A stretch of 62,319 nucleotides of DNA, taken from assembly GCF_001194135.2 (NCBI RefSeq), contig NC_068997.1:5171605-5233923 (forward strand), read 5' to 3'. Made by a program: the position numbers and the translations under genes. Source of the DNA: Octopus bimaculoides. Taxonomy: Eukaryota. Position 1 is the stretch's first letter. Every line of letters starts with the position of its first letter. Shown piece after piece: positions 1,659-61,271 of the stretch. The notes below the pieces were generated by a model, which worked only from the letters and a program-made list of their open reading frames with translations, had not been told where the DNA came from and did not search any database.

Positions 1659-1787
1659 CGGTACAACTTTGGGGTTCTTACTTATCAGATCTGCTGTGGT
1701 CACATGCCTTGTCTGGTCATCAAGACATTTAACATCCAGAGTAAACTCTACAGCACATTCACTACAGAAGTCCTCACATGCACAATC
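1659..1787 (-). CDS. POLR2C: RPB3 coding exon 4 (129 nt); later exons lie beyond the window start
   Basis: CTCAG acceptor; [43 protein letters not shown] with the RPB3 zinc-binding CxCxxxCxxC motif; GTCAGT donor. Confidence 0.97.
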
Positions 1788-3595
1788 CTGAGAAGAAAAA
1801 TATAAGCCAAATCAGATCAGCAGTGATGTCATGGAAAATTAACAGGAGAGAGGGAGAAGGGAGAGTTGGAGAGAGAAGGGGAAGCAAGAGGGAAGAGAGA
1901 ATAAGAAGGAGTGGGAGAAACAGAGAAAGAAGTGAATGGGGGATGGAAAGAATGTAAGGGGGAGTGGGGGAGGAGGTGAGAGAGATAAGGAGAAAGATAC
2001 AAAAGATAAGAAGGGGAGAGAGAGAGAGTTTATGTCAAAGTGGAAAGAGTGAGGGTGGGTTAAGACTGTTTTATAACAAACTAATTTGGTTCTTTGTCAT
2101 TTGGTAACAATAATAATGATGACAAAAGGTCATTTTAACCCCATGACAGGTACTTGTTTTATACCCCTTAAACAAATAAGTTTTTACAAATAAGCAACAA
2201 TGAACTCAGAATATACAGTGTCATAATAATGATCTCTAATGTTGGCACATTGGCTACAAATTGTAGAGACACCATGGTTTGAACTACAGGACCATTAACA
2301 ACTTGGAGTGAAGACTGAACCAACTCGTTTATTCTCATATTAAAAACTGACTAACAACAGCCTATGTCTATCCCCCAGTTTAAGTTAAGTATAGAGAAAT
2401 GATATCCTAAAACTGAGGTGCCACATAAAAAGCAGTGGAGCTGGTGCCACATAAAAAGCAGTGGAGCTGGTGCCACATAAAAAACACTCAGTACACTCTG
2501 TAAAGTGGTTGGCATCAGGAAGGGTATCCAGCTGTAAAAACCAAGTCAAAACAGACAAATGGAATCTGACAATTATAACAAATTATTTATAACCTGCCAA
2601 ACTGTATTGGAACTGCTTGGCCAACCATTTTGTAGCATTGTATAAATTTGTTATATTTTTCAAATTTGTTTTACTTTTTCTATAAGAAACTCTATACTTT
2701 ACTTGGAAGACAGAAGTAAAGAGGCATTCTCTGGTGAGAGTTTAATGCAAGACACATCCAGTCAGCTCTGCCCTAAAATCACACTATCTAAATTCTCAAA
2801 CTGAATACAAGTTTATTAAATATATTTATTAAAATATTTATGACTGTATACAAAAAAATAGGAGTATAGTTTGTTAAATAATAAACCGGCCATATCTGGC
2901 CCAAATATTCTACCTGTTTTATTTCCAAACCAGCCAGAACCAGCCCCTCACACCTACCCTACAATGTCATTCTAAAAACAAGCAATTACATTATCGAAAT
3001 CTCAAAGCTATGAGATAATGCATGATTAATTCAAAACACTGTGAATAAATAAGCATTACATTAGACATGGTAAACTGAATGCTAAAGGGTTAATTCTAGA
3101 TTTTACTAGTTTTAGTCAGAGACTGTGGCCTGGTAGTTAGAGTGTTGCACTCATGTCTGTAAGATTGTGGTTTCAATTTCTGGATCAGGCAGTGCATTGT
3201 TTTTGAATAAAACACTTTATTTTACATTGCTTCAGTCCACTCAACTGTAAATGAGTCACCCTGTAACAGACTGGCATCCTGTTCAGGGGCAATATTGTGA
3301 TCTCAACCACCTGTACACAATGGAAATTGGACAAACAGATATATGGACCGAGGACTTGAGACAATACTGTCCAGAAGTTGATGATGATGATGAGTTGGTG
3401 ATGCTGAGGTACCATCATTATGAAACTAATACAAAAATGGTTCTATTAATACATATTTTATTAACCCAGAGGGATGGAGAGTAAAGTGAATTCTGTCAGG
3501 ATTTGAACTCAGAACATAAAAGTGGTGACATAACAACAGCAATACAAGAAAGAGAAGAATAAGAAAGAAAAATTTCAGGTAATGCTGCTACTCAC

Positions 3596-3717
3596 TCTAG
3601 AATAAACCATTTTGTCCACCACTTCGTCACTGGTGAGAGGAATGAGACCAATACGATGGGATATAAACTCATCAAATAATACCGAGGAATTGGCTTCCAT
3701 CTGGACCCAGTCAATGG
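3596..3717 (-). CDS. POLR2C: RPB3 coding exon 3 (122 nt)
   Basis: TTAG acceptor; (A)[40 protein letters not shown] containing the RPB3/RpoD HR(I/L)GLIP signature; GTGAGT donor. Confidence 0.97.
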
Positions 3718-3869
3718 CTAACAAAATATAAACGACAGCAGCAGCAAATTAAAAGGGAATTAATACATGTATAAAAATTAGTTCTGAGGTTGACACGTGA
3801 CAACATCTAAAGAGAAAAGACAGACAGGAAGTTGATTAACATTACAGGTACTATATATATATATATATA

Positions 3870-4287
3870 CAGTAATCCCTTGATCATCGTGGGTGCTATG
3901 TTCCCAAACCCCCTACAATAGGTGAAAATCCGCAAAGTAGAAACAGTATATTTTTATTTTTTATAATTTGTATATATTTATTTTATTTTAAATGCAAAAG
4001 CAACACCACACATTCGCCTCCTGAGTTTCGCTTTCCATACAGTATGTATGATTCTTTGTTTACTCATCTATGGCACAGTACGTATTTTCTTTTAATATAT
4101 TTTAATTAATGTGTTATACAGTTTAGTACTCTACTGCACATTTATATATTAATTTTTAGGCATGAAAATGCTTATTTTACCACAGAAATAATTAAAATCC
4201 CCCAAAATATAAATACCTATTGGCCACAGAAACCCTCAATTAACTGAGGGTACGATAGGTGAACTGTGATATGGCAACTGATTACTG
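3870..4287. mobile_element. Tigger/pogo-like (Tc1-mariner) MITE
   Basis: Termini CAGTAATC...GATTACTG flanked by TA; no coding capacity. Confidence 0.75.
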
Positions 4288-4303
4288 TATGTATGTATAT
4301 ATG

Positions 4304-4347
<44 letters not shown>

Positions 4348-4792
4348 CGAAGACTTTTTGTCAGCTGTATGAATTATGAGTACTCAGTTTGGTGTACCAT
4401 TAAAACACTGATTTGAACTGCAACTGAAAAGTGTGGTGTTGAGATTGCCTACTGAAGGCAGCTAGAAGTGGTTTCTCCTTGAGCAGGTGGATATAGTTTA
4501 AAATAAAAAGATAAAAGAGCAAAACAATTGGCATTACTCGATAAAAAATTTAATTTAAATAGAGAACATATATATATACAATATTGATTTCAAATTTTGA
4601 CACAAGGCCAGCAATTTCAGAGAGGGAGTATGTCAATTGCATAAACCCCAGTGCTCAACTGGTACTTATATTATTGACCCCGAAAGGATGAAAGGTATAA
4701 TCGACTTTGGCGGAATTTGAATTCAGAACATAAAGATAGATGAAATCTTGCTTAGCATTTCGCCCAGCGTGCCAACAAGTCTGCCAGTTCAC

Positions 4793-4846
<54 letters not shown>

Positions 4847-5420
4847 NNNNNNNNNNNNNNNNNNNNNNNNNNNNNNNNNNNNNNNNNNNNNNNNNNNNNN
4901 NNNNNNNNNNNNNNNNNNNNNNNNNNNNNNNNNNNNNNNNNNNNNNNNNNNNNNNNNNNNNNNNNNNNNNNNNNNNNNNNNNNNNNNNNNNNNNNNNNNN
5001 NNNNNNNNNNNNNNNNNNNNNNNNNNNNNNNNNNNNNNNNNNNNNNNNNNNNNNNNNNNNNNNNNNNNNNNNNNNNNNNNNNNNNNNNNNNNNNNNNNNN
5101 NNNNNNNNNNNNNNNNNNNNNNNNNNNNNNNNNNNNNNNNNNNNNNNNNNNNNNNNNNNNNNNNNNNNNNNNNNNNNNNNNNNNNNNNNNNNNNNNNNNN
5201 NNNNNNNNNNNNNNNNNNNNNNNNNNNNNNNNNNNNNNNNNNNNNNNNNNNNNNNNNNNNNNNNNNNNNNNNNNNNNNNNNNNNNNNNNNNNNNNNNNNN
5301 NNNNNNNNNNNNNNNNNNNNNNNNNNNNNNNNNNNNNNNNNNNNNNNNNNNNNNNNNNNNNNNNNNNNNNNNNNNNNNNNNNNNNNNNNNNNNNNNNNNN
5401 NNNNNNNNNNNNNNNNNNNN
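4847..5420. other. Assembly gap; others at 7229-7872, 13607-13616, 24594-24785 and 34590-34599
   Basis: Runs of N. Confidence 0.99.
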
Positions 5421-5431
5421 ATATATATATA

Positions 5432-6130
5432 TATCAGGTCATCCCATAAGTTCTGTCCGAATTTTGAATAAAGAAAACATGTGATCAAATGTTATATTTA
5501 ATTGCAATTTAATCATCAATGTACTTTCCTTGATTATCTATGACTTCCTTCCATTTATTTACAAGCTTTTTAATCCCATCAATGTAAAACTCTTTTGGGT
5601 TCAAAGCGAAGAACTCTGAAATATCAGTTTCGACCTCCTTCTGGCTTGCGAAAGTTATGTCCCCCAAATGATTCTGTAAACTACGAAACAAATGGGAGTC
5701 TGAAGGAGCAAGGTTGGGAGAATAAGGTGGATGAGGAATTTTTCCCCAACCAAGCTCTCCAATCTTTTGTGATGTGATCTTTGCAGTGTGGGGTCGTGCA
5801 TTGTCCTGATGAAACATCACTCCTTTTCAATTCACTAAAGCAGGTCTTTTTTCTTCAAAGTTTGGTTCAAACGTTCTAATTGCTGACGGTAGACTTGAGC
5901 ATTGATTGTTGCATTAGGTGGTAACAATTCAAAGTGAATTACTCCTCTGCAATCCCACCAGATAGAGAGAAGAACCTTTTCCCCATGAAGTTCCCTTCTC
6001 GGCTGTGGTTGAACTTTTTCCCTTTTACCAAGTCACTATTTACAGCGTTTAACATTTCGATAGAAAATCCATTTTTCGTCACCAGTCACAAGTCTATCCA
6101 AAAAGGGTGAAATGAGTAGAGCATGTCATT
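5432..6130 (-). mobile_element. Mariner transposase 3' half with one terminal repeat, degenerate
   Basis: Minus strand gives LVTGDEKWIFY (about 6060-6100) and FHQDNARPH...HPPYSPNLAPSDSHLF (ORF 5509..5820), i.e. mariner DD34D motifs; the end abuts a (TA)n tract. Confidence 0.92.
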
Positions 6131-7001
6131 TCCAAATTTCTGACAGTGTGGATGGCGTCATGATGCTGTTTTTCTCACAGACTGTGCCCAACTGATCCTA
6201 CTATACTGTGTAGTTGACAAAACCAAAAACAAACAATGTGTGAAATTAAAAATATAAAATGGCAACAATTTACCCCTCACACCCTGTGTGTATGTGTATG
6301 TGTGTGTGTGTGTGTGCGTGTGCGTGTGTGTAATATTAAAATGAGAAGGAACATGGTCAGTGCTCACCCCACCCAAACATTTGAATTTAGATTAATGAAG
6401 GGACATAACTACATACTACATGCGATTTGGTTTACATGTCATGCATCACCCTTACTATGATGATAATTCTTTCTTATTTTGGCATTAGGTCAATAATTTA
6501 GGGAGAGGGGATTAATTATTGACTCAAGAATTAACAGATACTTTATTTTATCAACCCTGAAAGGCAAAGTTGACCTTGATGGGATTTGAACTCAGAATGT
6601 AAAGAGCTGGAAGAAATGTTGCTAAACTGACAGAATTGTTACCTTGAGGTTATTATTCAGGCTCTTTGTGTTCTGAGTTCAAATCCTAGTGAGGTCAACT
6701 TTGCATTTCATCTGCCTGGGGTTAATAAAATACCTGTCAAGTACTAGGGATCAATTCTTTCCTCTCCCTCATTCTCTCAGAATCAGTTGTACTGCATTGG
6801 GAATATGTTCCAGGAAACCACTCCTAGTTTCCCTTTCCTACAAGAAATGATGATAGTTCTGCTGTTCTTCCAGTTTGGTTTGCAACTCCCACCTCTCTTT
6901 TTCTGTATGTACACAAACACACAGACATTTCTCAAAACTATCGTCAAAGACAAGTCAAAAATTTGAATCTCTATTCTGTCCACATCTTTCCCTCTGCCTT
7001 T

Positions 7002-8222
7002 CATCATCATCATCATCATCGTTTAACGTCCGCTTTCCATGCTAGCATGGGTTGGACGATTTGACTGAGGACTGGTGAAACCGGATGGCAACACCAGGCT
7101 CCAGTCTGATTTGGCAGAGTTTCTACAGCTGGATGCCCTTCCTAACGCCAACCACTCAGAGAGTGTAGTGGGTGCTTTTACGTGTCACCCGCACGAAAAC
7201 GGCCATGCTCGAAATGGTGTCTTTTATGNNNNNNNNNNNNNNNNNNNNNNNNNNNNNNNNNNNNNNNNNNNNNNNNNNNNNNNNNNNNNNNNNNNNNNNN
7301 NNNNNNNNNNNNNNNNNNNNNNNNNNNNNNNNNNNNNNNNNNNNNNNNNNNNNNNNNNNNNNNNNNNNNNNNNNNNNNNNNNNNNNNNNNNNNNNNNNNN
7401 NNNNNNNNNNNNNNNNNNNNNNNNNNNNNNNNNNNNNNNNNNNNNNNNNNNNNNNNNNNNNNNNNNNNNNNNNNNNNNNNNNNNNNNNNNNNNNNNNNNN
7501 NNNNNNNNNNNNNNNNNNNNNNNNNNNNNNNNNNNNNNNNNNNNNNNNNNNNNNNNNNNNNNNNNNNNNNNNNNNNNNNNNNNNNNNNNNNNNNNNNNNN
7601 NNNNNNNNNNNNNNNNNNNNNNNNNNNNNNNNNNNNNNNNNNNNNNNNNNNNNNNNNNNNNNNNNNNNNNNNNNNNNNNNNNNNNNNNNNNNNNNNNNNN
7701 NNNNNNNNNNNNNNNNNNNNNNNNNNNNNNNNNNNNNNNNNNNNNNNNNNNNNNNNNNNNNNNNNNNNNNNNNNNNNNNNNNNNNNNNNNNNNNNNNNNN
7801 NNNNNNNNNNNNNNNNNNNNNNNNNNNNNNNNNNNNNNNNNNNNNNNNNNNNNNNNNNNNNNNNNNNNNNNNNTACACTTTCAGCGCACCCACCCCCACT
7901 ACTAACTTGGTCGCCCAGATAGCGGAAGCTATCGATTAGCTCTAGTTTTTCTCCCTGGAATGAGATAGAAGTTGTTTCCTGTTTGTTTGCAGTCTTTATT
8001 GCACCTGAACATCTGCCACAAACAAAAACTAACTTGCTAGTTAACCTGCCTTTGATGTTGCTGCACCTCTTATGTGTCCATAGCTTGCACCGGGTACATC
8101 TTATAGAGTTACTACCTACTCCTTTTCTACATACTGAGCAGGGCCATCTACCTGAAGGGGTTTGTGTTTTATCTACCTTCCTACTTATTAGGATTTTGGT
8201 TTTAGCTAGGTTGACTCTAAGC
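7002..8222 (-). mobile_element. RTE-clade LINE, 5'-truncated, interrupted by an N-gap
   Basis: LRVNLAKTK...DSFRYLGDQVSSGGGCAESV (RT C-terminal region) plus the family 3' UTR ending in a (GAT)n tail at about 7002-7020. Confidence 0.9.
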
Positions 8223-9051
8223 ATATTGACATGTATAGAAATGTACACACAGATAAAAATATATGAATGACAACAGTATTATCTGCTTGTCCATGTGTGT
8301 GTACACACACATGCACAGAAACATATTTCTTAATAGACATTAAGCTACCACTTCAAAAAATAATAAATTCCTTCTTTTAAAAGAAATACGTTTATTATTA
8401 ACTGAAAAGAAAATGATAAACCTCCATTCTTTAAATTTCTCTTAATAAAATTTACTACTGAATATTTATTTTTTTTCTGTTGAATTTTAATAAGTTACTT
8501 TCTTCACAATAAGAAATGCTAAATATCTATTTATCATTCACTCTGTTTTTTATCTGTCTCACCCAACACACAACTAACTTTCACTTCAGTTTTCTCCATT
8601 CATTTATTTTAGAAAATAGTTGGAAGATTATTTTTTAGCAGCTATTTTGAAATTTATTATTAAAATGTTTGTCGTGAAAGAAGACAGTGTAAATCCACAA
8701 TGTCAAGCAAGCATTGCAGATGCAGCCTTGTTTTTTTTTTTACATCAATCTCTTATCTAATACACATCCTCATGAGAGGGAGAAGATGCATTTATATGTA
8801 TCAATACATAACAGGAATCAATGTTGTAACAGCAGGGAACTAAAGCAAAAACAGGTGGTGGTTGTAGTTGCCTAGCCCCAAGTTGATGCTGAATGATCAA
8901 AAGCATGTCAGCCATGACCATCCTGTCTTATTCAGACACAGTGTACCTCAGAGTATATTATGAAATATATCCTCCCATCTTTTAAGATGGTGGACTGTGT
9001 TTTTAAAGAGATTTGATTGCTATTTCTTGATGGTCAAGCTACCATACAGAG

Positions 9052-9291
9052 CAGTGGTTCTCGACTGGGGTCCATATAAAATTTTGTTGTTAAAATTTAT
9101 CTGCAGTAAATTGGTTATACTTCTACAATATGTAAAATATTTTAATTTTTTTTATACAATTCCTAATAATATATAACTATTAAAAATACAATAGGATTTT
9201 TTAAGACACTGAATAGCTGGGGGGGGGGGGTCAAGCAGAATATAATAGGAATCAGAGGGGTTCATAAGTAAAAAATGGTTGAGATACACTG
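9052..9291. mobile_element. hAT-type MITE
   Basis: Termini CAGTGGTTCTCGAC...GTTGAGATACACTG; TSD not clear. Confidence 0.7.
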
Positions 9292-9366
9292 ATGTCGAGT
9301 ATGCTGTAGTAGCTCAACTGAAAATAAGTGTTAGGAAGAAATGAGAAAAAGAATGTGATAACTCAC

Positions 9367-9416
9367 CCATGGTAGGTACTTCTGCTATACATACTCGTCT
9401 AAGAGCATTGGCGGAG
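9367..9416 (-). CDS. POLR2C: RPB3 coding exon 2 (50 nt)
   Basis: Polypyrimidine+CAG acceptor; (S)SANALRRVCIAEVPTM(A); GTGAGT donor; phase fits exons 1 and 3. Confidence 0.96.
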
Positions 9417-10629
9417 CTGAATATAGGAGAAGAGGAGAAAAATTAGTTGAAGTGTGGAAAGTAGATGTTAAAACATTGATAATGATGAGATCAAAAATTC
9501 TGATGATGGCAGTGGTGTTGATGATGATATTAGTGATTATGATGTTGATAATAACTCTAATTATGATGATATCAGTGACTATCATAATAATCATCGTTTT
9601 AACATCAACTTTTCCATGCTTGCATGAGTCAGACAGAATTTACTGAAGTAGATTTTTCTAGTTTGGAGTTCTTCCTGTATCAACCTTTACTGGTTCCTAA
9701 GCAAGGTAATATTTGTTCAGACTAGACATGATTTTTGCAGGATATTGAAAATGAATAACACAGCTTGTATGACAGTGACAATCATTTATAACTATCACAT
9801 GATGTCAGAACATGGAGACACAAACACACACAGAAAAATATAGTGTTGAGAAATATTTGTGTGTCTGTGTGGTTAGAAGTTTGTTCTCAACTACACAGTT
9901 CCAGGCTCAATCTTTGGCACAGGTCTTCTATTATTTGGTAGACAGAAACTGAAAGAAGTCTGTCGCGCACGCGCGTGTGTGTGTGTGTTCCTTGCCTTGA
10001 CATTGCTTGATAGTTTGCAAGCAGGCATCACTGTGATGCAAGCTTTGTCCATTTCCAATATTCTGTGAAAGCATGTCAAGTCATGGGGAAATGTCACCTA
10101 GTTTGGAAACAGGTGAGGGTTGGTGACAAGAAGAGCATCCAGTTGTAGAAAATCCACCTCAACAAATACTGTCCAACCTATGCAAGCATGAAAAAGTGGA
10201 CATTAAACGCTGCTGCTGCTGATATGCATACACACATAATGGGCTTCTTTTAGGTTCCATCTACCAAATGCACTGACAAGGCTTTATTAAGCTTGGGCTT
10301 GTAGTAGAAGACTCTTGCCAAAGGTGCTATGCAGTGGGACTGAACCCAAAATTATGTGGTTTGGAAATAAACCTATCGACCACACACCCCTACCTACACC
10401 TGGTGTATGTATACACACACACACATCATAAAATGCACTGATCGACTTGGGTCTCTACAATATAGTCATATCCCAAAATAGAAGTAATAAATAGCAACAG
10501 TTCACTTAAAACATTTTTAGATTAATTACATAATTACATGGTACTTAAAATGTTGATGATTAATTAGATGGTTCTTAAAATATGGCAAATTAATTACACA
10601 GCCATAAGATGTGGAAGATTTGCATTGTT

Positions 10630-11500
10630 GTTGCAGTTGGATAAGGAGGCAGAGTAACTGCATGCAAGCCAGGGTTTTATTGGTGACTCAGTCATTCTAC
10701 TTGATGTTTAGGATCCCTCTCAGGCCAGAGAAGGAAGGCACTGAGCTGAGAACACAAGCTCTGTAGACTGCAACCTTGGTGTGTGCTGTTAGCTTACTAT
10801 TCTCCCAGGCTCTCATCAACCTAACAAGTGTTGTGGCTGCTCTTCCAATATTTCTATTGATCTCAGACTCCAGATGTAAGTTGTCCAGGATGTTGGAACC
10901 AATGCATGTAAGCTTCTGGACTGCTCACAATTGTTAATGGCAATGGCAGTGGGGTGCTCAAGACCATGGCCCAGCACTTTTGCCTTCTTTAGAGAGATGG
11001 TCAAGTTAGTCTTGACAGGCACTTGTAAAACTGTCCATGAGGCATTGCAGTTGCTCCTCTGAGTGTTACCATGTCCACATCATCTGAAAACAACAGGTTT
11101 CTGATGAGTACTTTGGATTTTGCCAGCAGTTAAGACACACTCAGATTGAGGCTAGGGGTGAGCACACACTCTGTTTCACACCACTGCAAATGCTGAAGCA
11201 TTCTGAGAAAGAACCATCAAACTAAAAGACACCTTTCATGTCTGTAAGGAATGACCGAATGATACTGAGTAACCTTGGAGGGTACCTAATCTTGGCAATA
11301 TCTGCTCATAAGGTCGAAGGCTTTCATGAAGTTGATGAAAGTGATGTGAAGTGGTTGTCTTTGATTTCTGCATTTGTTTTGTAATTGTCGAAGATCATGT
11401 CAATTTTGGAGCATTCTGGTTTGAAACTACATTGAGACTTTGAATAAACCCTTTCAGTGATTTTCTTCAGTTTGTTTAGGACCACAGGAATTAAACCCTT
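10630..11500 (-). mobile_element. Degenerate BovB-like RTE LINE fragment
   Basis: Frameshifted LTISLKKAKVLGHG.EHPTAIAINN / GSNILDNLHLESEINRNIGRAATTLVRL and HITFINFMKAFD; distinct from the PHD-bearing RTE family in this window. Confidence 0.7.
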
Positions 11501-11786
11501 CTCTTAGCAAGGAGATTCTTCTATAGTTGTTGTGATCACTTTTACCCCCTTTCTTCTCGTACATGGTAACAATACTAGTCTCTCATGTCCAGTGGCACCG
11601 TACTTTTCAGCACTGGCACAGGTACAGCAGTTTGTGCAGATGGCACTCAATGCTAGCTGAGCACTTGATGGTCCCCATTGGAATGCCATTCAATCCTAAT
11701 GCTTTGCCGGTGGAAAATCAATCAATGGCTTTACTCAGTTCTTCAAGTACTTGTACCACGTGTGTAGCCCACCTTCATAATCAACC

Positions 11787-11818
<32 letters not shown>

Positions 11819-12544
11819 ATACACATAAGGTTGATCAGTAAAAGGTACTGTGTTGTGACAGTAGATGGTAACAAGGAGATACAGTAAGAGTTGGTGGTGA
11901 AGTAAGATCTGAAGATGCTGGGCTTCATAGGCAAGATAATGCTGGACCATGAATGATTGGAATGTGCCATATCACATATGGGACAATGTGATATGTCACA
12001 TATGGAACAATAAACAATCATGATGATGTATGTTTTCATCAAGTTCGTTTAAGCCTGTGTTGTAAGCTTTAAAAAAATGACTCGATTATATGTTTGACCT
12101 AGTAATTTTGTTTGATTCTATTAAATCGCTCTTCTTTCTCTTTGTAGACAATGTAGACATATTGAAAATTTGTAGTGGTAAATTCTTTATACGACAAACT
12201 TTCTGGAACAAACTTAGGACAGAGTTGCTTCATAAGAAAAGAAAAAGGTATAGAAACGGGGACCAGAATCGTTATTTTCATGATAAGTAACACAAGAATA
12301 CTATTTTAAAAAAGGGGGTAGAGAAAACTGGTATCCTCGCTTTTATTTTATTCTTTCGCATACAGTATGGGACTTCGAGGGACAGATATTCCAAAAACTC
12401 TGCAAAATTTAGTCGGTATTTTTCCTCAACTATTTCCAAGGAGTTCAGAGAAGAGTCTTGCGTGATATGTTGCTATTACAGAATTAAAGAATCTTGCTCC
12501 TCGACTGAGAATTAGGAAGAAACAAAGTTGTGTTGTGTGAGCAA

Positions 12545-12569
<25 letters not shown>

Positions 12570-12580
<11 letters not shown>

Positions 12581-13260
12581 GTCCTTTCGAGTATAGGCAC
12601 AAAGCTTGAAATTAGGGGGGAGGGGGTTCGTCTATTACACAGACGCCAGTGCCCAACTAGTACTTATTTCATCAACTCTTGTGTTCAACTGGTACTTATT
12701 TTATCGACCCTGAAAGGATTAAAGGCAAAGCCACCCTCGGCGGCATTTGAACTCAGAGCGTAAAGGCAGACGGGTTAACGTTTCTGCCAGCTTACCGCCT
12801 TAATAATAACGATAATGGTCGCAAATTTTGGCACAAGGCCAGCAATTTCGGAGGATGGGGCAAGTCAATTACATCGACCCCAGTAATCAACTGGCACTTA
12901 ATAATAATAATCTTTTTTTGGTTAACCTTTTTTCTTTTATTTTCTATAAGTAAAAGGCCTGAAATTTTGGGGGGATGGGGTAGTTAATTATATTGATTCC
13001 AGTGCTCCAACCTCGTTGGCATTTGAACTCAGAACGAAAAGACAAACCAAATGCCGCGTAGCATTTTGTCCGACGTGCTAACGATTCTACTAGCTTACCG
13101 CTTTAGGATAATAATAGTAATAATAATAATAATCCTTTTGGCGTCCTTTCTACTATAGGCACAAGGCCTGAAATTTGGTGGTGGGGAGGGGACTAGTCGA
13201 TTACATCAACTCCAGCACACAACTGGCACTTAATTTATCGACCCGCAAAGGATGAAAAGG
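12570..13260 (-). mobile_element. Cluster of about 4 full or partial copies of the abundant tRNA-type SINE (Meta-domain-like core GCCTTTCATCCTTTCGGGGTCGATAAATTAAGTACCAG), separated by (AAT)n
   Basis: Repeated motifs GGCACAAGGCC, CAACTGG(T/C)ACTTA and ATTTGAACTCAGA; the family name is from memory. Confidence 0.8.
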
Positions 13261-13272
13261 GTATTTATTTAC

Positions 13273-13358
13273 CTGAGGTCTGTGTCCTCCAAAACGAATT
13301 TGATATTCTCATCAGTAAGCTGTGAGATGCTTACAACAGGTCGATTGGCGTAAGGCAT
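13273..13358 (-). CDS. POLR2C: RNA polymerase II subunit RPB3, coding exon 1 (86 nt)
   Basis: Reverse complement reads [28 protein letters not shown], followed by donor GTAAAT; matches the known RPB3 N-terminus [28 protein letters not shown]. Confidence 0.97.
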
Positions 13359-13525
13359 GAATAGCGAGTGTTAAACACATGGAATAGAGAGAGAAAGATA
13401 ATTGCGAAGAAATTTCTTGAAGACGAACAGAACTATATTGTGGAAGTGTGTTCTCAAGCTGATAGTTAACAACAGAGATAAAAGTATGGAAACCAATATA
13501 TCACATTGGTCACCAACTGGATTAT

Positions 13526-13540: not shown

Positions 13541-13606
<66 letters not shown>

Positions 13607-49291: not shown

Positions 49292-51174
49292 TGTGTATGT
49301 CACAAACAGAGACATGGTTTTGTGGCTCACTGCAAGAATTCATCATAAACTAAACATTAACTCATGAAACACCAACTGTACATAACGCAGAGGTTCTTTG
49401 GGAGCAAGTTTCCATACAGAGTTCCAGACATGCCAGTACCATCATATTAGAAGAATCAATAGACATCACATGACATTGCAAGCCATCCTAATTTGATAAA
49501 TTATCCAAGCCAGATGACATTTGACATAAATGGTGTTGTTACTAAAGGTGGTCAGTCCAAACAACTTACATTGCTATTTTAAGATAGTGAACATCGACAA
49601 TTCAGTAAGCTATGTCACACCTCAGCAGATGGTTTTTCTAAACTAAAGCCAGTCAATCCCAACATTAGATAGAGGAAGAAATAATATTCATAACTGAACA
49701 GATCTATATGGTGTTATGTACAAGGGCATTATTATATATAGCCATTTTTCTCTGAAAACAATTGCATATATATATATACACACACACACACACCATATAT
49801 AACCAATCACATATATGTAATCAATTTTCTCTGAAAACAATCACAACATTTTGAGATTCACTCCACGTTTCTCTAGTTTAATTAAATTCAACTGGAGACA
49901 GCAAGTGCTTTCAAAACCTAATTCATTTGTAACCAGCTCAAACAAAAGTGTTAACTTTTAATTCATTCACCTTAGTTAAAAATCTAAAAGGTAATTACTA
50001 CAATATCAAGATATGTGATCTGTTTTGAATGTACTCTCATTAACAATGAAGGATTTTTCCTTTGTGACACATTCATGCAGTCAAAACGCTTCACACCATT
50101 TTTGTCTCTAGTAAAAGAGGATAAATAAAATTAAAAGACAATCCCACCCCTCTACCCTGTCACCACCACCACTACTGCATAGCAGCAACAGCAACAAGAG
50201 ATGGTCATGCAACACAATGATACCTAAGTGACTTCAACGAAAGACATTATGAAAACAAGAACAAGGATCAACATACCGAGAAAGAGAAATAAATTTTAAT
50301 CAGGACACTGAGAAGAAGAGCGTTCATGACATTCAAGGGGAAGTCACTGAAGTCGCACCATTGAGATCTAAGTAAACTGAATTAGCAACTTCAAAATAAT
50401 TCCTTTCAGATGAGTAAAAGGGAAGGGATGTAAATATACCAGGAGGTAAAGGAGAGAAAGAATAATACCTTGGTAACCTTTTGTCACTACTATATACTTC
50501 TATACTGCCTTTGTTTTACATTTTTGAAAATAATGAAGAATTTATTAAAAGAACTTTGTCATTATTTGAGCTGGTGTTTGGAACATAAATTAGCAGAGTT
50601 TCAATGATAGGCTGCAATTTAGATCATTTTCAAAATGGGAGGTTTGTATCATAGAGCCTGGGGTGATCTCAAGTGGGTTGGTATCAAAATGGTTTATAAA
50701 GCACTACTGAGGAAAACTATGGAATTTGGTTTAAACTGAGGCAAAGCTTGGAAAATTTCAAAATAGAATTTCTTTACATTGACATAACGAGAGAAAGTAA
50801 ATGCAAATTATTAGTGAAGGTGAGAAAGATTGCAGAGGGATGGGGGAGGGAGGAATTAAAAACTTTTTTCTTTTTTTCTATTCCTGAAATACTGGAATTA
50901 TATCAGCAGTTGAAAGCAAACTGAAGTAACTATGCAGCATAGTATAATGAATGCCAGCACCAAAGACTGCTTGTTGACCAATGGTGCAACATGTTACTAT
51001 ACATTCAATAGCAACCACACAATATCTAATGTAAATAGTGTTTACAGGAGCAAAAGAGTACAGTAAGAACATAGCTCACATCTATTTCATACACACAGAC
51101 ACAGAAATCCTTAATAAATATCAAGTCCACCAGCAAAACTAATCAGGGAGTGAACACACTGCCTTTAACATTCA

Positions 51175-51209
<35 letters not shown>

Positions 51210-51672
51210 CACACATACACACAGTGCATTATTATTCTGTAAATGATTTTGAAAACAAATGAGTTAGTTCATAAAACGTGGAATTCGTTTGGTGCCTTCT
51301 CTGTCCCACACACTTTATATTTCAATATGCTGTCTAAATATTTTATATTTAGAAATAGGAAAAGGCAAATTCAGAAGAAAATGTTTAGAAAATCCCTGTC
51401 AGGATTCAGTCCTCCAAAACGAGACCCTATGATAATTAACTAGGCAGACTAATAAGAGCAAACATTAAGATGCTCCTTTATAAATATAATTTTAAAAATA
51501 TTTCTAGTACTTTGTCACACATTTTAAAATAAAATTTGATACAAAAAAAAAAAAACTTTTTTTCATATTTTAAAGGTTAAAGCATGATTTTCTTTTGCTT
51601 TTCAATTTAAAAAAATGACTAGTTTAATAGGAATTTCACTTCGTAAATATAATCCATCTATGTGTTTGTGTA

Positions 51673-52546
51673 TAAGGTCTGATCAATAAGTATCTAGACT
51701 GTTGCCATAGTAACAAAGCTAAAGCACACAGAGTGAAGCCACTTAGCACAGACTGACCTTGAACTCTGCTGTACATGCATACTAAGTTTTAACATTCTAG
51801 CTCACTTCCACTGTTTACAGCAGTGCTTGGAAGGAAGGTGTGTAGCATGTGAATTTTGCATTGACCATGACAGAAAGTTGTCATGGTGATATTTGTTCAG
51901 AGGCCTACACAAAGCTGCAGAAAGTGTAGGGGGAGGAGTGTATGAGCTGCACACAAGTGTACGAGTGGTTCAGAAGTTTCTATGATGGCCGAAAAAAATC
52001 GATATTGACAAAAGTTCTGGGAGACTCGCAACCAGCAGAACTGAGAAAAGCATTTCAGATGTGCATGCAGCTGAGGGCAGATTGTCAAATCACCATCCAT
52101 GGATGTGCGGATTAGTTACAGTTCAGTCCATTATCACTAAAGATTTGGGCATGAGACGCCATGTCTGCCAGGTTTGTGCCAAAACTGCTTTCATCTGACC
52201 AAAACGACACTCAGGTTTCAGTTGCACAAGATCTTGATTGTGTCAAGAACAATGAAAACTTTTTGAAAACTTTGCACAGGTCTCTGAACAGGTATCGCCA
52301 AGCTTTTGGCAAAATTTGATGCAGGTTCTTTGCTCAGCTTTCTCTGTCATGGTCAATGCAACCATCACATGCTACACACCTTCCTTCCAAGCACTGCTGT
52401 AAACAGCGGAAGTGAGCTAGAACGTTGAAACTTAGTGCACATGCACAGCGGAGTTCTAAGTCAATCTGTGCCAAGCAGCTTCACTCTGTGTGCTTTAGCT
52501 TTGTTACTATAGCAACTGTTCAGATACTTATTGGATCAGACCACAC
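51673..52546 (+). mobile_element. Non-autonomous mariner derivative with ~210-bp terminal inverted repeats
   Basis: About 51673-51882 is an imperfect reverse complement of about 52335-52546; the interior has decayed mariner HTH sequence (EECMSCTQVYEWFRSF). Confidence 0.85.
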
Positions 52547-53338
52547 GATATCCTTATTCACACACACATACATACGTTTATATACACACACACAAACATA
52601 CATGTATACACACACAAAACTACTGTAATCGAAGTCTCAAGGTGGACAAGAAAAAAAATTGAAATTGAAGAGGAAACAAAAAACTAGTTTTAAAAAAAGG
52701 AAGTACTACATGTTTCCACTTGGCAAAAAAAAAAAAAACCTAATGGTACAGCTTGCATCTACCATCAAATTAATGTTGCTGCATTAGATTTTTACAGAGT
52801 TAAAAGTCACTGATAAAAATTAGTTAAAATATACTTAAAAATCTATAAAGAGAAAAAAAAAAAAAAAAAAAATTAAAGCGACGCAGTCAAAAGCAGACAG
52901 ACCAATTAACCAAAGTAGGAAGTAATGAACTGCTCCATAAGTGTAGAAATTAGTAATTAAATTACAGTTGTTCATGGACTATGTATACATTAGATGTGTG
53001 AAATGAAGATAAAACACAAGCAAAAAATGGAGGGAGGGAGGGGAAAAAAACGTTCATTTGGTGCTCATTCCCCCATCTCTTCCCTGTTGTGTTAGCAATC
53101 TATGTTCAGGCTTAAACTTAATATGTACAACTGTTGACTACATATATCCATACATCCATCCATATGTAAATATATGAATACATTACAAAAAAAAAAAAAA
53201 AAAAAAAAAAAGACCCTGCTGTTCCCTTAAGAATATTTATTGATGGTGATTGAAGAAACAGGCTGTGTAAAGAGAAAGACCTAGATTTAAAATTTATTAG
53301 GGCAAAGTTTAGCTGGAACAATTATGAACTTATCATCA

Positions 53339-54550
53339 TCATTTGTGCAGATCCATGGTATATTTCTGCCTATGTTCTCGAATATTTTTTTTCTGTATAT
53401 CTATTAACTGCTGTATCTGCATTTGTAGTTCACCAAATTGTTCTCGTCCACCTGTGGCATTTGAAGCGGAGGCAGTTGTAACAGAAGAGGGGAGAGGGTT
53501 TGTTAATGCCTGAGAAGAGTGCAAATTAGATGGCCCGCTTCCATTAGACTCTAGGCTGTGTCCAATTAGTTTTTCATTGTCCAGTCTTAAATCTGAACCT
53601 TGACAATAAGAGTTATAGCGTAATGATTGCGATGCAGACAATTGTTGCTGTTTGGATCCACTTTTGTAAGGTGTCAGAGATGTATCACACACTTTCTGTC
53701 TTCGAGCAGAGTTCCTATATGTCGAATCAAACTGTACATCATTCGAAGTGCAAGAAGGGTTTACAACGGGGTAAGCATTATTTGGATTAAAATGTGACTT
53801 ACTAGAAGTAGCTGAGCTCTGTAGCATGGGATCGATTCTGCCTGTCACTGATTTCTGTGAATAGGAGTCTATATGACCCTTCATGTTAACCATATGGTTC
53901 ACATCTTTCATACGGTCTAAGGGGGGATAGTCCACCTTACTATTGTGTAGTTGTTTCATGCTAACATTTGCTGAACCCGTATGGTTATCAAGTTTTAATC
54001 GGTTTTGATTGCTCCATTTGCCAGACACTTGGCTAGACCCGGGTAATTTAGCCTCACCATCACACGGAGGAATGGGAGTTTTTATAGTTAGTTTCAGAGG
54101 TGCATTCTGATGGGGACGCACAATGTGTGAATGTCTATCAGATAAGGACTTAGAATCTGCACGTGGCACAGAACTTTTGTGCATCTTTTTTCTTTGATCA
54201 AGTTTTGGATTACTACTACTACTGCTACTACTAACTGAAGCAGCAGCAGCAGCAGAAGCTGCTGCATGTGTTGCTGAAACTCCAGGAACACCAACAGCAG
54301 TAGAGTCCAATGGAAAACTAGATTTTTCAGGTTGTGATAGTACTTTCACAGGAGTTTCCACCTTAAAGCGGACCTTCCGGTCTGAAGGCGAAGAGGCAAT
54401 GTTCAAGCGTTCCTTTGTGAAATCGCTTTCGGCAGATGGACCGGGGCTGCTGCCAGTGGCTGTAGAATTAGACGTTCCTCGTATATCAAGACGACTTTTC
54501 TTTTCAGGTGGTCCATCTTTGTCTTTATCTTCATCTTTATCTCGACCAGA
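53339..54550 (-). CDS. CCNT: Cyclin T large final coding exon (1212 nt, 403 aa plus stop), disordered C-terminal region
   Basis: TTTGTAG acceptor at 54551-54552; phase-0 frame SGRDKDEDKDKDGPPEKKSRLDIRG... runs into ORF 53339..54406 and ends ...KYTMDLHK*. Confidence 0.9.
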   Translation of the reverse strand, partial: SGRDKDEDKDKDGPPEKKSRLDIRGTSNSTATGSSPGPSAESDFTKERLNIASSPSDRKVRFKVETPVKVLSQPEKSSFPLDSTAVGVPGVSATHAAASAAAAASVSSSSSSSNPKLDQRKKMHKSSVPRADSKSLSDRHSHIVRPHQNAPLKLTIKTPIPPCDGEAKLPGSSQVSGKWSNQNRLKLDNHTGSANVSMKQLHNSKVDYPPLDRMKDVNHMVNMKGHIDSYSQKSVTGRIDPMLQSSATSSKSHFNPNNAYPVVNPSCTSNDVQFDSTYRNSARRQKVCDTSLTPYKSGSKQQQLSASQSLRYNSYCQGSDLRLDNEKLIGHSLESNGSGPSNLHSSQALTNPLPSSVTTASASNATGGREQFGELQMQIQQLIDIQKKNIREHRQKYTMDLHK

Positions 54551-55352
54551 CTACAAATAAACAAACACAACATTTGAACTCTCAAAAGTAACGTAAGAGA
54601 TATATCAAAAGATTCAGAATCAAGAAATTCTTAACCTTCCACCGACACAAGAAACTAACCATTAGCTTTGAGCAGTCAATTGATTTACTTAAATTCACCC
54701 GACCGCATACACATACCCAGTTGATTTACTGAAATTTCCACACACAGACCATTAATTTACTTACTGTCTCTGTCTCTCTCTCTCACACACGACTGCTTAA
54801 CTTAATAAATTTACTTGAATTAGAAGCTGGTGGTGATAAAACTATCACAAGCTATGAAAATCTACAGAACGACCAAATACTGTGGATAATGATATTGTTA
54901 TTCACTGAGTGGGTTTAGTCATTGGACTGCTGCCTTCAAGGTTAAACTCGGTCCTGTTCTGGCATCTTCAGATGGTTGAAAAGCCAAATCTACCTCAGTG
55001 AAATTTGAGCAGACATGCATTGCTGGGTGTTTCATAACTGATGACCAATCAATTCATCAACCAAAATAAACAGAACCTATTGAGTATATGTAAGCAATAA
55101 CAGTCAAATCGACAAGTCTTTCATTGTTGACTTTAAAAAGAAAAGATAAGAGGGGCACATTTGATAATGTAATCATATGCACAATATCTAACAAGAGACA
55201 ATGATTATGGTTGGGACATCTTTGATTATGGGTCTGTTAGGTCATAGCTGAGCGCAGGCTAAACTGCAACTAACTATTCAAATGAAACACTGGCTCATTA
55301 CCCTGTACTGATGGAAAATTCAATTGTAAAAGAAGTACATTTTAATACATAC

Positions 55353-55426
55353 TCTCCAAGTCATGATTTTTTTCTTTAATCGAGTTGGACATCCATCAAG
55401 AACTTCTAGGAAATCGATGGTAAGCT
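55353..55426 (-). CDS. CCNT: Cyclin T exon (74 nt)
   Basis: (E)LTIDFLEVLDGCPTRLKKKIMTWR, compare [24 protein letters not shown]; ATCAG acceptor, GTATGT donor; phases consistent. Confidence 0.95.
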
Positions 55427-57057
55427 CTGATTGAGAGAAGATACAGACAAATAAGACAAAATTTAACAAAGCAACAAAATAGATGCCTTAATACAATATA
55501 AGGATAATGGTAAAAGATGGTCTCATAAAAAACTGAGAAAGGGTATCCAACTATAGAAACCATGCCAAAGTCAACACTGGAGATGAAAGTACTCTGGCTC
55601 ATTGGATACAGTCAAACTATCCAACCAATGCCAGCAAAGAAGACATGCTAAATGATGATGTGAAATGCAAGTAATATGGATGTTTCTTATTTAAAAATAT
55701 GCCCTAACTTTACTGTATTTGTTTTAGGAGTTTGACTGACAAATATATAAGTTAATCAAATACCAACAGTCTGATTTTGAGGTTTTTTGTTATTTTTACC
55801 ATCTTACAATGTTAGAAGTACAAGTTTTATAAAATATTTTAAAGTAAATGTCTATGTTAGCTGTATGTTAATGCTGCTACATAAACATTAACCTAAAAAT
55901 TAGTATAAAACATGAAAGTACTTGAGATAGTGTAAAATTGTAAAAATAAAATGTGATATTCAGACTGTTAGAATTTGATTGACCCATGTGTGTGTGTGTG
56001 TGTGTGTGTGTTAACAGAGACATTTTAATGTCCACTATTCTATGTCTACATGGGTAATGAATTTTACCAAGGTAAATTGTTTATGGCTTGATGCCCTTCC
56101 TATCATCAACACTCACTTTGTTACCAAACAATGTAATATTTTCTCAAGGCCAGATGTTTCCAGGGAAAATTTGAAACAAATGACACTGCTTATATGGTAG
56201 TGACACTTATTTACAACTATTGCATGATGTCAAGACAAGGAGACACACATACATATAAGACAGGTTTCTTTCAGTTTCTGTCAATTAAATCCATTCACAA
56301 GGCTTTGGTTAACCAGCGGCAATAGTAGAAGACACTTGTCCAAGGTGTCACATCATGGGACTAAACCCCAAAACATGTGATTGGGAAGTAAATTTCTTAA
56401 CCAAACACCCATATAATACATATACTTTTCATAAAATTCAATATTCATTATATATTTAGTAAACAGCCCAAATAAAATATTTTCTTTAATAATTATCTTT
56501 TACATTTAATACATCTATTACTTTCCATTTGTTTTACAATGGAATTTTTAAAAATTTAACATTAAAAAAATGAATTTATCTCTGTAGTTATTAATGTTCA
56601 ATTTCATAAATTTCAATTAACACAAAATTATTCTGATTAGCCAAGAGTTTAGTAATGAGTTTACTTGTCTAATTTTATGTGTACTTAATTAAAATGAATT
56701 TACAATGAAACATTAGATTATTAAAAAGCTAACATTATTATTTACAATGGATTTCTAAGGAAACATAAACAGCAAGTCATTTCTCTGACATTTGCTTACT
56801 TACGTTCTATTAAGAGCAACTAATATCATAAGACACCCCCACTTCAAACATCACTGTTGTTAGCTGTTCCTATGAAATAGGAACAAACCTACAGCTAAGA
56901 CAGTGTGAAGGTGAGGTTATGATACTTGCTCAAAGGTTTTCTAGGTTTTCTATTTTTTACAAACCAGATTTTTACATAGGAAGGTGTATAAGTCAGAATT
57001 TCAGATCCATGAGCTAGATGTCTGTAGGCTGTACTGAAGATAAGACACAATGCTCAC

Positions 57058-57130
57058 CCTCAAGAAGATCTGGAGTGACAGACTTTTCAACGTACGAATA
57101 CCAAGGTTTCCCTTCAGCAGACGACTGCAA
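57058..57130 (-). CDS. CCNT: Cyclin T exon (73 nt)
   Basis: LQSSAEGKPWYSYVEKSVTPDLLE, compare [24 protein letters not shown]; CTCAG acceptor, GTGAGC donor. Confidence 0.95.
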
Positions 57131-57897
57131 CTGAGAAAAAGAAAAAAGAAATATACATAAATTTGTAGTGTAATATACGGATTCTATATATATAAAAATA
57201 TCTGCACAGTCAGTCATCACCTACTCCCCCTTCTACCAACTCATGCAACCTTCACTGATCCTCAGTGTTGATTCCTGTCCCTACTCACCTCATACGTTGA
57301 AGGTCCACGCAGACATCTTATCACTAAAATTATCTCTTTCCAGCTCCACCTGATCACTCCCACCTTCTTGTCTAACGTGAGTAATCCTCTACAACAGAAA
57401 ACCTGTTCTGGTCCCTTTTCCTCATATTTTAACCCATCTCCAAACATAAAGAGGCCTCCTTAGGGGTTCTTAGCCTTGCAAGCTGCATGGTGGCCTCACA
57501 TATGTTAGTAGCACAAAAACAAGAAAAAAAGCACACAATAAATGCTGTAAAGTTATCAGTTGTAGAAATGAAGCCAAAATAGATACTAAAACATGATGCA
57601 GTCCTTGGACCCATCATACTCCGTCGAAACATCCAAGCCATGGTAGCATGGAACATGGACATTAAATGACAATGACAACTGTTAAACTGTTATATTTCAC
57701 ATCAAATACAAACTGCAAAAAATCAGTCTATATGCCTGTGTTTATGCGTGTTTTACAAGGAATCTTTAGTCTTTACTGATTATCTTTCGTGTTACTGACA
57801 TAATTTTTTTTTTCCATCTTAGACTGGTGTTAGTAAATACTGTGAGTGTATCTGTGGGGGAGTTTGTAAAAATAAATTAAAAGCAAAATGAACTTAC

Positions 57898-57988
57898 CTC
57901 CCAGCTACCCCACCTACTAGCAAGATGTATACAGACACAAGCAACTACTGTTGGTTTGTACATCAAGCACATTGTGGTTAAATGCAAA
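57898..57988 (-). CDS. CCNT: Cyclin T exon (91 nt)
   Basis: (S)[30 protein letters not shown], second cyclin box; GACAG acceptor, GTAAGT donor. Confidence 0.96.
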
Positions 57989-58801
57989 CTGTCCAAAAAG
58001 AAAAATATTCAGTGTTAGCTGACAGTAAATTCAAAGTAGAATACAACAAAATACATTATTTCACAAATTATTAATCTGGGAGAAATTTTTCACAACAAAG
58101 TAAAAAGACCTTTTTTATTTTAATATTGTTGGTAGTGTCACACAAAAACGCTCAGTACACTCTGTAATGTGTTTGGCATTTGAAAGGGCATCCAACTTTA
58201 GAAATCATGTGAAAGTAGACAGTAGAGTTTGGCACAGTCTTCTGGCTTGCTAGCTCCTGTCAAACCATCTAACCCATGCTAGTATAGGGAGCAGTTGGTA
58301 AAGGATAATGATGATGATGATGTATAAGTTGTGTCCAAAAAGCTGCCAGTTTCCTTAAGCTGATGATCTCGATCTCAACAGTGAATGTTGTTTCCATGTG
58401 TTGGTTTTTCATTAAACATGCGATGATATTCACGACAAACATGGCTCACAGATTCAAATTTTGCAAAGAATGTGTCAAACTTTCCTTTGCACCACCCACA
58501 TCTTGACTGATGCATCAGCTTGGTGTAGCATTGTTTGCATCACTGTCACATGGCTAGCTGTGTATGCATCTTGCATTTTCTTCATTCATCCAACTAGAAT
58601 ATTGATTAGATGTGTGCCGAGCAACAAATACAACCCACATCGAACTGCACTAAACTATACATAAATTTTATTAGTTGATCTCTTATTCAACATGTATATG
58701 AAATGAGTAGTGTTGCAAGTTATATCAATAAATAGTTCTGAAATCCCATCATGAATTTATAGATACACTGTATCGATGCAAACAGGCCACATCACTAGTG
58801 A

Positions 58802-60245
58802 ATGCATTCAGGGAAACAATCTAAGAGAGACAACTGTACCAGTAGTCGTCCCATCGAAAGAATAGAGGTACATATATGGTCGTTGCTAGTAGTGGACGTC
58901 ATGGTGGAGGGAAAGGTATCACAAGCCCTCATGGACACAGGCTGCTCAACAACCCTAATGACTCCAGAGGTGGTAGAAGAATGGAGTGGAGTGAGTAGTG
59001 TAAGGGCTGTTGACAGAGGAAGTTGCGATGTGGAGATGGTGGTAAGAGGAATGAGATTGAGGTTGCATGCGATCGTGACTGACCGCGTGGTGGACGGAAT
59101 CGATGTAGTGATGGGGATGGACGCAATTGTCCATTTGGGAGGTGTCACAGTCAATGAAGCCGGTGTAACGTTTGATGATGCAGGGGCACTATGTGCCGTG
59201 AGTTCGCGACGGGAGAGTGGTGAGAGCTGCAAAGAAAAATATGCTGCACACACCATTACAGACAAGGATTTTGGGGCTGTGTTCAACGGCCAGCAATGGG
59301 CAGTGGAATGGTACTGGAAGGGAGGTCCTCTGACATCGAAAAATGCAGTAGGCTGCTATCAGCATACCCTGAAAGGGGATACCAGAATCAAGTTCGAGAG
59401 AGAGGTGGAACAGTGGATCAAGGAAGGCATTCTGATCCTTTGGAAGGAGGAAGTGGAGAGTGGAGTGCTACCACTGATGGCAGTGGTGCAGCTGACGAAG
59501 CATAAAGTCAGGCTGGTATTAGATTTTCGAGAGCTGAACAACCAGGTATTGTGCCATATGGGCAGTTTGGATGTTTGCAGCGAAACCTTGAGAAAGTGGA
59601 GGCAGATGATAGGGGCCTCCACAATCATCGATTTGAAGTCAGCATATCTGCAGCTGTATGTGGCTGAGAGACTGTGGAAATACCAGCTGGTAAGATACAA
59701 GGGCTGGACATACTGCCTGATCGGGCTGAATTTAGCACTGAAGATTACGGCAACAATTCTCAAAACCATCCTGAGAAAGGTGGACAAAGTGAAAAGAGCC
59801 ACCAATTCCTATATTGACGACATCCTAGTGGACAAGAGCATATTGTTGGCAAAGGAGGTCATAAGCCACCTGAAGAGTTTTGGGCTAACTGCCAAGCCAC
59901 CGGAGGCAAAGGAAAGCTGCACTGGGACTCAAGCTACTGAGAGACAAGGCTGGCATGCTGGTGTTCTGGAGAGGGAATAAGATACCAGAACTGGGTACCA
60001 GGACAAGTAGGTGAGAACTGTTTTCTGTGTGTGGGAAGCTGCTGAGACACTACCCGATTGCAGGATGACAACGGACGGCTGCAGCTTCATCAAGAGGCGA
60101 GCTGAAGGAGTGAGGTGGAGTGACAACGTGGGCGAGAAGACAACTGCCATGATGCAAGAAGTCTTGGAGAGAATGACTGCAGAGAACCTGGTAAAAGGAA
60201 ACTGGTATGTGCCCAAATTGAAGAATGTGATCGTGTAGTATGACA
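58802..60245 (+). mobile_element. Ty3/Gypsy pol fragment (aspartic protease, RT, start of RNase H) in a cyclin T intron, antisense
   Basis: 392-aa ORF with ALMDTGCSTT (protease), VRLVLDFRELN, IIDLKSAYLQ and SYIDDILV (RT); frameshifted continuation; no LTR pair seen. Confidence 0.9.
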
Positions 60246-60759
60246 CTAGCAGAAGGTGTTGGTCATTGGTCATTGCCTCCATGAGGCCCAACGCTCAATG
60301 CATGTTGGCTTGCCAGATCCTGTAAAACCACCTAACCCATGCCAGCATAGACAACAGTTTGTGTGTGTCCGTCCGTCCGTCCATGTCTGTGAACACATAT
60401 ATACATACAATAGGAATCTACAGAGTTTTTGCTCATCAAATTTCAATCAAAAGGTTAACCTGAGAATACTGGAGAAGACTAACTAGCCCAAGGGACATGC
60501 AGTGAGATAAAATTCATAAGCACAGGGTGACAAAGCTTATTCTATATCCACATAGTCATACATGTATGCATATGTACCTATAAATACATGTGTGGCCAGC
60601 ATTCGCCATGATAGATTGCTAGTCACTACACATTCTTTATTTTCTTTCCTTGTTTCTTTCTGTGGAAGAGTGTAGGCTCAAAACTTTTTCACTTCCCAAG
60701 CGTTAAACTAATACATCTGTTTGTTGTCTACACCACCTGTCTTTGTTTTTTGTTTGGTG

Positions 60760-60804
<45 letters not shown>

Positions 60805-61225
60805 ATCATATTAGTTATAAGGATGTATTTATCATAATGATTGTGGCTCCATGGAAGGACAAGTTGCAGAATTATGGTGTGAAGATTAACACTATCAAAT
60901 GAAGCATTAACTGTTTCATCCCACTGTTGTCACACCACCCAATTTCAATATTTTTAGTAGGCATCAACAAAAGAATCTCTTTGGGGTTATGACCCCCCTA
61001 CAAATATCAGCCAAAGCTCCTGAAAACAAACCTTTTAGCAACAACAACAAAGACATCAGATGATGTAGTCCTAGATAAACAAGTTATAAGAACACACTCC
61101 TTACCACCACATAGCCAGTAGGTAGTGGTTCTCTACAGGCAGGGATATTTACACAGCCCCACCCACCACAACCACTGAAAAAAAGAAAAGAAAACAATGA
61201 GTTGAATTGATAGACTAGAACATAC

Positions 61226-61271
61226 CTGTTTGTTGCAAGGAAGTATGATGTCTGAGCAAGATCCTTACTGG
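61226..61271 (-). CDS. CCNT: Cyclin T exon (46 nt), first cyclin T exon visible in the window
   Basis: TTTTCAG acceptor; (A)SKDLAQTSYFLATN(S), nearly identical to vertebrate cyclin T ASKDLAQTSYFMATNS; GTATGT donor. Confidence 0.95.

Follow-up and report, generated by a model that had tools for sequence, protein, structure and literature searches.

Several kinds of conserved gene neighbourhoods have been described in animals. In the bidirectional-promoter type of the conserved ancestral microsyntenic pairs (CAMPs), e.g., HSPE1-HSPD1, the same non-paralogous genes retain a conserved 5'-5' arrangement, and a spacer below 1 kb in such pairs is a recognised hallmark of ancestral co-regulation (Irimia et al. 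2012, PMC3514665). Other described systems are the microsyntenies of the coleoid genome reorganisation (Schmidbaur et al. 2022, PMC9023564) and the functional or operon-like gene clusters of animals. We analysed a stretch of 62,319 bp from Octopus bimaculoides (NCBI RefSeq assembly GCF_001194135.2, contig NC_068997.1, positions 5,171,605 to 5,233,923), in the following called the window, which contains the adjacent genes POLR2C, encoding the RNA polymerase II (Pol II) core subunit RPB3, RPRD1B, encoding a CREPT-type CID protein that binds the carboxy-terminal domain (CTD) of the polymerase, and a cyclin T gene (CCNT). The original prediction had regarded this trio as a possible Pol II microcluster, either ancestral or assembled in the cephalopod genome rearrangement. 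Our comparison suggests a composite instead, which we consider likely: an ancestral bilaterian divergent pair of POLR2C and RPRD1, to which cyclin T was added late as a neighbour, probably by chance.

The POLR2C-RPRD1 pair resembles the CAMPs (PMC3514665) in a spacer of well below 1 kb, in its retention across protostomes and deuterostomes and in the nature of its members, both broadly expressed housekeeping genes with related functions. Unlike in the CAMPs, co-regulation of POLR2C and RPRD1 is putative, the pair was not seen at the RPRD1B locus of Callorhinchus and the Octopus spacer measures 4.9 kb. The neighbourhood of RPRD1 and CCNT is, like the coleoid microsyntenies, a new adjacency present in octopods and not in other molluscs, but it is not among the blocks in the part of PMC9023564 considered here, and that part of the supplement holds no entry with a CID domain. 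One Octopus-Euprymna block in the same part combines an Rpb3-like gene, which could be POLR1C, with a SCA7-domain gene, no RPRD1 being listed. With operon-like clusters the locus has in common that neighbouring genes belong to one pathway; unlike these, the trio has neither a shared transcript nor a shared orientation, and its arrangement is not conserved even within the Octopoda. Judged by its arrangement, the POLR2C-RPRD1 pair may be an additional example of the known class of co-regulated conserved microsyntenic pairs. A description of it was not found in the searched literature: none of the texts names POLR2C together with RPRD1A or RPRD1B in connection with synteny or a head-to-head arrangement, the published lists of conserved pairs being outside this search, and the supplements of PMC8851819 yielded no match for the pair.

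Gene content of the window

Exons were located in a first pass by tblastn with human probe sequences, which served for locating only, and the borders were refined with octopod proteins and by reading of the splice sites. All identity assignments are based on database matches, none on the human probes. Between positions 1659 and 61271 all 13 introns have GT-AG borders, and the spliced frames are open in all three genes. POLR2C is present on the reverse strand with its 5' part only (1659..13358), as established by tblastn, splice sites, translation and the Pfam families PF01193 and PF01000. The coding exons 1-4 (13358-13273, 9416-9367, 3717-3596 and 1787-1659) encode residues 1-129 in frame, and the remaining exons lie beyond the left window end; the orthologous gene calls of O. 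vulgaris, Haliotis and Liolophura comprise 274 residues. The best matches, 80-84% identical in molluscs, are named 'DNA-directed RNA polymerase II subunit RPB3', which identifies the product as the Pol II subunit rather than RPAC1 of Pol I/III. Residues 1-129 matched RNA_pol_L (PF01193, 2.1e-9) and RNA_pol_A_bac (PF01000, 2.9e-10), i.e., the Rpb3/Rpb11 dimerisation domain is interrupted by the Rpb3/RpoA insert domain, and the zinc-loop cysteines CxCxxxCxxC are visible in exon 4. Identity to the human POLR2C probe was 59-72% per exon.

RPRD1B is encoded on the forward strand with a complete coding sequence of seven exons (18253..32553: 18253-18403, 22905-23034, 26822-26928, 27767-27999, 29096-29222, 31002-31177 and 32419-32553). 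The spliced product is identical over 352 of 352 residues to XP_014784780.1 (RPRD1B, O. bimaculoides), and Pfam assigned the domains CID (residues 8-123, 2.9e-42) and CREPT (residues 209-351, 2.6e-48). Cyclin T occupies positions 53339..61271 of the reverse strand with its 3' part only, the last five exons (61271-61226, 57988-57898, 57130-57058, 55426-55353 and 54550-53339, the latter including the stop codon). These are 100% identical to XP_014784769.1, a cyclin-T1-like protein of O. bimaculoides, and contain the second cyclin fold (CycT2-like_C, PF21797, 3e-37). The cyclin-box exons are located beyond the right window end; the N-terminal cyclin box (Cyclin_N, PF00134), which is the CDK9-binding part, is present in the cyclin T orthologues of O. 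sinensis and Argonauta. This box of the O. sinensis orthologue has no counterpart in either RefSeq version of the O. bimaculoides protein, and the first 65 residues of version.1 match repeat-like sequence in the RPRD1 introns (19833-20037 and 25294-25487). The gene model of cyclin T is probably incomplete in this assembly.

The identities of the three genes were thus correctly predicted, as were their order and orientation, POLR2C (-) being head-to-head with RPRD1 (+) and RPRD1 tail-to-tail with cyclin T (-). The accompanying claim of no other protein gene between them agrees with the Pfam results and with the annotation of related genomes. Among 20 of the longest open reading frames (ORFs) of the window and 92 ORFs of the spacers, Pfam detected only fragments of reverse transcriptases and proteases and sub-threshold noise, and no gene is annotated between those of the trio in O. 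vulgaris and Argonauta.

Conservation of the POLR2C-RPRD1 pair

For the orthologue survey, RPRD1 loci with flanks of 10 kb were collected and their DNA was re-examined by tblastn. POLR2C protein searches gave truncated models only, and their use for synteny was limited to Dreissena and Solemya. The head-to-head arrangement of POLR2C and RPRD1 was present in all five non-cephalopod invertebrate bilaterians sampled, with the following distances between the start codons: 384 bp in the abalone Haliotis asinina (gastropod), 373 bp in the chiton Liolophura sinensis, 349 bp in the scallop Pecten maximus (bivalve), 374 bp in the acorn worm Ptychodera flava (hemichordate) and 345 bp in the feather star Anneissia japonica (crinoid). 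In Pecten, exon 1 of POLR2C was found by tblastn, the gene table omitting the gene. Including Octopus, the same two non-paralogous genes are adjacent in four classes of the Mollusca, in the Hemichordata and in the Echinodermata, always in 5'-5' orientation, and the 4.9 kb of Octopus are the exception to a spacer below 1 kb. The two genes of Dreissena lie on contigs of equal size. By parsimony, the pair existed before protostomes and deuterostomes diverged. The expectation of a non-random arrangement was thus borne out for POLR2C and RPRD1, with support from three other mollusc classes and two deuterostome phyla, and was left unsupported for a unit of three genes.

At RPRD1B of the elephant shark Callorhinchus, the only vertebrate paralogue examined, POLR2C was not found upstream. 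The human genes are located on chromosomes 16, 18 and 20. Vertebrates appear to have lost the pair, hence surveys anchored on the human genome would overlook it. The sponge Geodia barretti has an RLL/RTRAF-family gene (PF10036) in place of RPRD1; this gene faces POLR2C head-to-head at a distance of 144 bp (9111-10001 of the retrieved stretch).

A distance of about 350-385 bp between the start codons would leave space for one short promoter region only, and POLR2C and RPRD1 most likely share a bidirectional promoter. Any chromosomal break in such a spacer would harm one essential gene or more, which would keep the genes together. The pair might also have been retained neutrally, the spacer of about 350 bp being a tiny target for breakpoints with no need for co-regulation. 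The consistently tiny spacing and the missing conserved motif are in line with neutral retention, as is the position of the sole observed break, which occurred in Argonauta and hence in the clade in which the Octopus spacer expanded about 13-fold. Opposed to it is that all five non-cephalopod, non-vertebrate bilaterians sampled have retained orientation and spacing for over half a billion years, a pattern linked to co-regulated pairs (PMC3514665). Moreover, any break within such a short distance would strike promoter sequence, such that the neutral explanation overlaps with that of a shared promoter. We consider neutral retention unlikely and prefer an ancestral pair held together by a putative common promoter, with cyclin T as a late addition.

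Several observations weigh against this composite explanation. The shared promoter is deduced from the spacing only: the five short spacers have no motif in common beyond chance, the frequency of common k-mers not exceeding that of shuffled controls. The five non-cephalopod bilaterians include no ecdysozoan, annelid, cephalochordate or cnidarian, and the vertebrates are represented by the single paralogue of Callorhinchus. For the part concerning cyclin T, RPRD1 is missing from the 10 kb that follow this gene in a cuttlefish-like contig from a metagenome assembly in the ENA, a range shorter than the Octopus distance, and weak selection could account for the preservation of the RPRD1-CCNT adjacency in Octopus and Argonauta just as neutrality could.

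Motifs of the ETS, YY1 and NRF1 type were noticed by eye in some species and are absent from the Octopus spacer. An attempt to delimit the Octopus promoters by conservation gave no distinct block, O. vulgaris being colinear throughout and Argonauta sharing coding exon 1 only.

Cyclin T as neighbour of RPRD1

In Argonauta hians, RPRD1 and CCNT are convergent and 5.1 kb apart, compared with 20.8 kb (20,785 bp) in the window. The upstream side differs: it carries a PI3-kinase gene, whose end is 3.8 kb away from RPRD1, and the 10 kb upstream contained no exon of POLR2C. In other molluscs, CCNT and RPRD1 were assigned to contigs of different size, 55.1 and 44.2 Mb, respectively, in Pecten maximus, 112.7 and 131.4 Mb in Sinanodonta woodiana, 80.8 and 90.9 Mb in Patella vulgata and 35.4 and 59.9 Mb in Gigantopelta aegis. 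Since the contigs differ in size, the two genes are on different chromosomes in these two bivalves and two gastropods. The contigs carrying POLR2C and CCNT in Solemya differ in size as well. In Haliotis, Liolophura, Pecten, Ptychodera and Anneissia, the 10 kb that follow RPRD1 contained no cyclin gene. The three genes hence do not behave as a conserved unit: Argonauta has RPRD1-CCNT without POLR2C, and the five bilaterians have POLR2C-RPRD1 without CCNT in this range. An ancestral three-gene Pol II microcluster is contradicted by the location of CCNT on other chromosomes in four molluscs and by the broken arrangement in Argonauta. On this distribution, the RPRD1-CCNT adjacency would have arisen in the octopod lineage, or at most in the cephalopod lineage.

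The three genes could still form one selected, co-regulated Pol II module that combines a core subunit with a reader of the CTD and the cyclin of a CTD kinase, was assembled in cephalopods and is held by a regulatory domain common to all. It is established that the three products act on Pol II (see the reviews PMC8091971 and PMC8140126), the adjacency of RPRD1 and CCNT is kept in two octopod superfamilies, and no other protein gene interrupts the trio. These arguments are countered by the loss of the unit in Argonauta, where POLR2C is not beside RPRD1, by the separate chromosomes of cyclin T in the four other molluscs, and by the convergent orientation across a spacer of 20.8 kb that contains a transfer RNA (tRNA)-like element. 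With our own rough estimate of about 100-300 genes for the Pol II machinery in a total of 15,000-30,000, one of the two genes flanking a fixed pair would fall into this class with a probability of roughly 1-4%, which is not small when many windows are scanned and is unremarkable for such a scan. We regard a selected module of all three genes as improbable. Even less probable is a combined form, in which POLR2C and RPRD1 would be a bilaterian-wide bidirectional unit, selected for coupling the output of RPB3, the platform of Pol II assembly, with that of RPRD1, the scaffold of a CTD Ser5-phosphatase, and in which the octopod cyclin T would have been captured into the same chromatin domain, with a lineage-specific regulatory hub of Pol II core, reader and writer as the result.

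Chance adjacency of cyclin T is the simplest reading. Being convergent and separated by a repeat-bearing spacer of 20.8 kb, RPRD1 and CCNT cannot share a promoter. The extensive genome rearrangement of the octopod or cephalopod lineage may have brought cyclin T to the 3' side of RPRD1. The tail-to-tail position, the long spacer and the lack of a common promoter make the adjacency most simply a neutral accident, yet one that has remained unbroken.

Spacers, introns and assembly gaps

The divergent spacer of the window extends over 4894 bp from start codon to start codon (13359..18252) and is the expanded counterpart of the spacers of 345-384 bp. It contains two diverged copies of one repeat (14384-14791 and 15948-16387), a retroelement ORF with a zf-RVT domain on the reverse strand (16094-16561, Pfam) and microsatellites. 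In O. vulgaris the spacer measures 4873 bp and is colinear with the window over its whole length. After the growth to 4.9 kb in the Octopus lineage, with a retroelement fragment and repeats now in between, the two promoters were probably separated, or an intron of the 5' untranslated region was placed between them. Such growth would relax the constraint on gene order, which would fit the loss of the pair in Argonauta.

The convergent spacer (32554..53338, 20,785 bp from stop codon to stop codon) carries scattered interspersed repeats, and Pfam assigned no domain to its ORFs. A tRNA-Thr(TGT)-like element was detected by Rfam and ARAGORN on the forward strand at 44179-44251. The match is weak, with 37 bits in Rfam barely above the gathering score, and a T-run is present 8 nt downstream. 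The element may be a Pol III gene or the head of a tRNA-derived short interspersed element; no such element was found in the RPRD1-CCNT spacer of Argonauta.

Five gaps of unspecified bases (N) are present in the interval, all outside of coding sequence: two in intron 2 of POLR2C (4847-5420 and 7229-7873), one of 10 N in a microsatellite of the divergent spacer, 250 bp upstream of the POLR2C start codon (13607-13616), one of 192 N in intron 2 of RPRD1 (24594-24785) and one of 10 N in the convergent spacer, 2 kb downstream of RPRD1 (34590-34599). An artefactual joining of the trio in this gapped scaffold was considered, the more so as the two gaps of the POLR2C intron are covered by no other assembly examined. 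These two gaps are confined to a single intron with intact exons on either side, and at the junction of exons 2 and 3 no residues are missing relative to the orthologues. The independently assembled O. vulgaris chromosome OX597830.1 is colinear with positions 9160-41190 and covers the last three gaps. As the same 130 bp of O. vulgaris (25249-25379 of the retrieved stretch) align to both flanks of the gap at 34590-34599, this gap represents an unmerged contig overlap and not missing sequence. Argonauta shows the RPRD1-CCNT neighbourhood directly, and RPRD1 and cyclin T are on contigs of equal size in O. sinensis as in O. bimaculoides. An assembly artefact is thus very improbable as the origin of the adjacency.

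The introns hold several further elements. ORFs at 5512-6460 in intron 2 of POLR2C resemble by eye fragments of mariner/Tc1-type transposases (...DNARPHTA...PYSPNLAPSD...); the single ORF of this region submitted to Pfam (5512-5826, reverse strand) gave no match. In abalone and chiton, one and the same POLR2C intron harbours an orthologous small protein-kinase gene nested in antisense (1412-4485 and 1909-5125 of the respective retrieved stretches, both on the forward strand). The closest solved structures for the C-terminal half of this kinase are those of the NEK family. The corresponding octopus intron extends past the left window end. Intron 2 of RPRD1 measures 3.8 kb in the window versus about 0.55 kb in O. 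vulgaris and contains a repeat-rich insertion of 3.4 kb (23215-26607) that is not present in O. vulgaris. The insertion carries the gap of 192 N and an RVT_1 fragment, located by Pfam at 25266-25835 on the forward strand. In the cyclin T intron between the first two exons of the window, an ORF of 392 codons on the forward strand (58802-59977) has an aspartic-protease match and the reverse-transcriptase motif YIDD, which identifies it as a fragment of a retroelement pol gene.

Conclusions

We advise against treating the proposed cephalopod Pol II microcluster as a functional unit. The head-to-head pair within it, apparently more than 500 million years old, links a core subunit of Pol II with a CTD-binding regulator. 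If the promoter is shared, the pair would offer a simple system for studying how the supply of a polymerase subunit and of a CTD-phosphatase scaffold stay in step. The octopods, with the inflated spacer of Octopus and the broken pair of Argonauta, may serve as a natural experiment on whether the expansion of a spacer releases the constraint on gene order.

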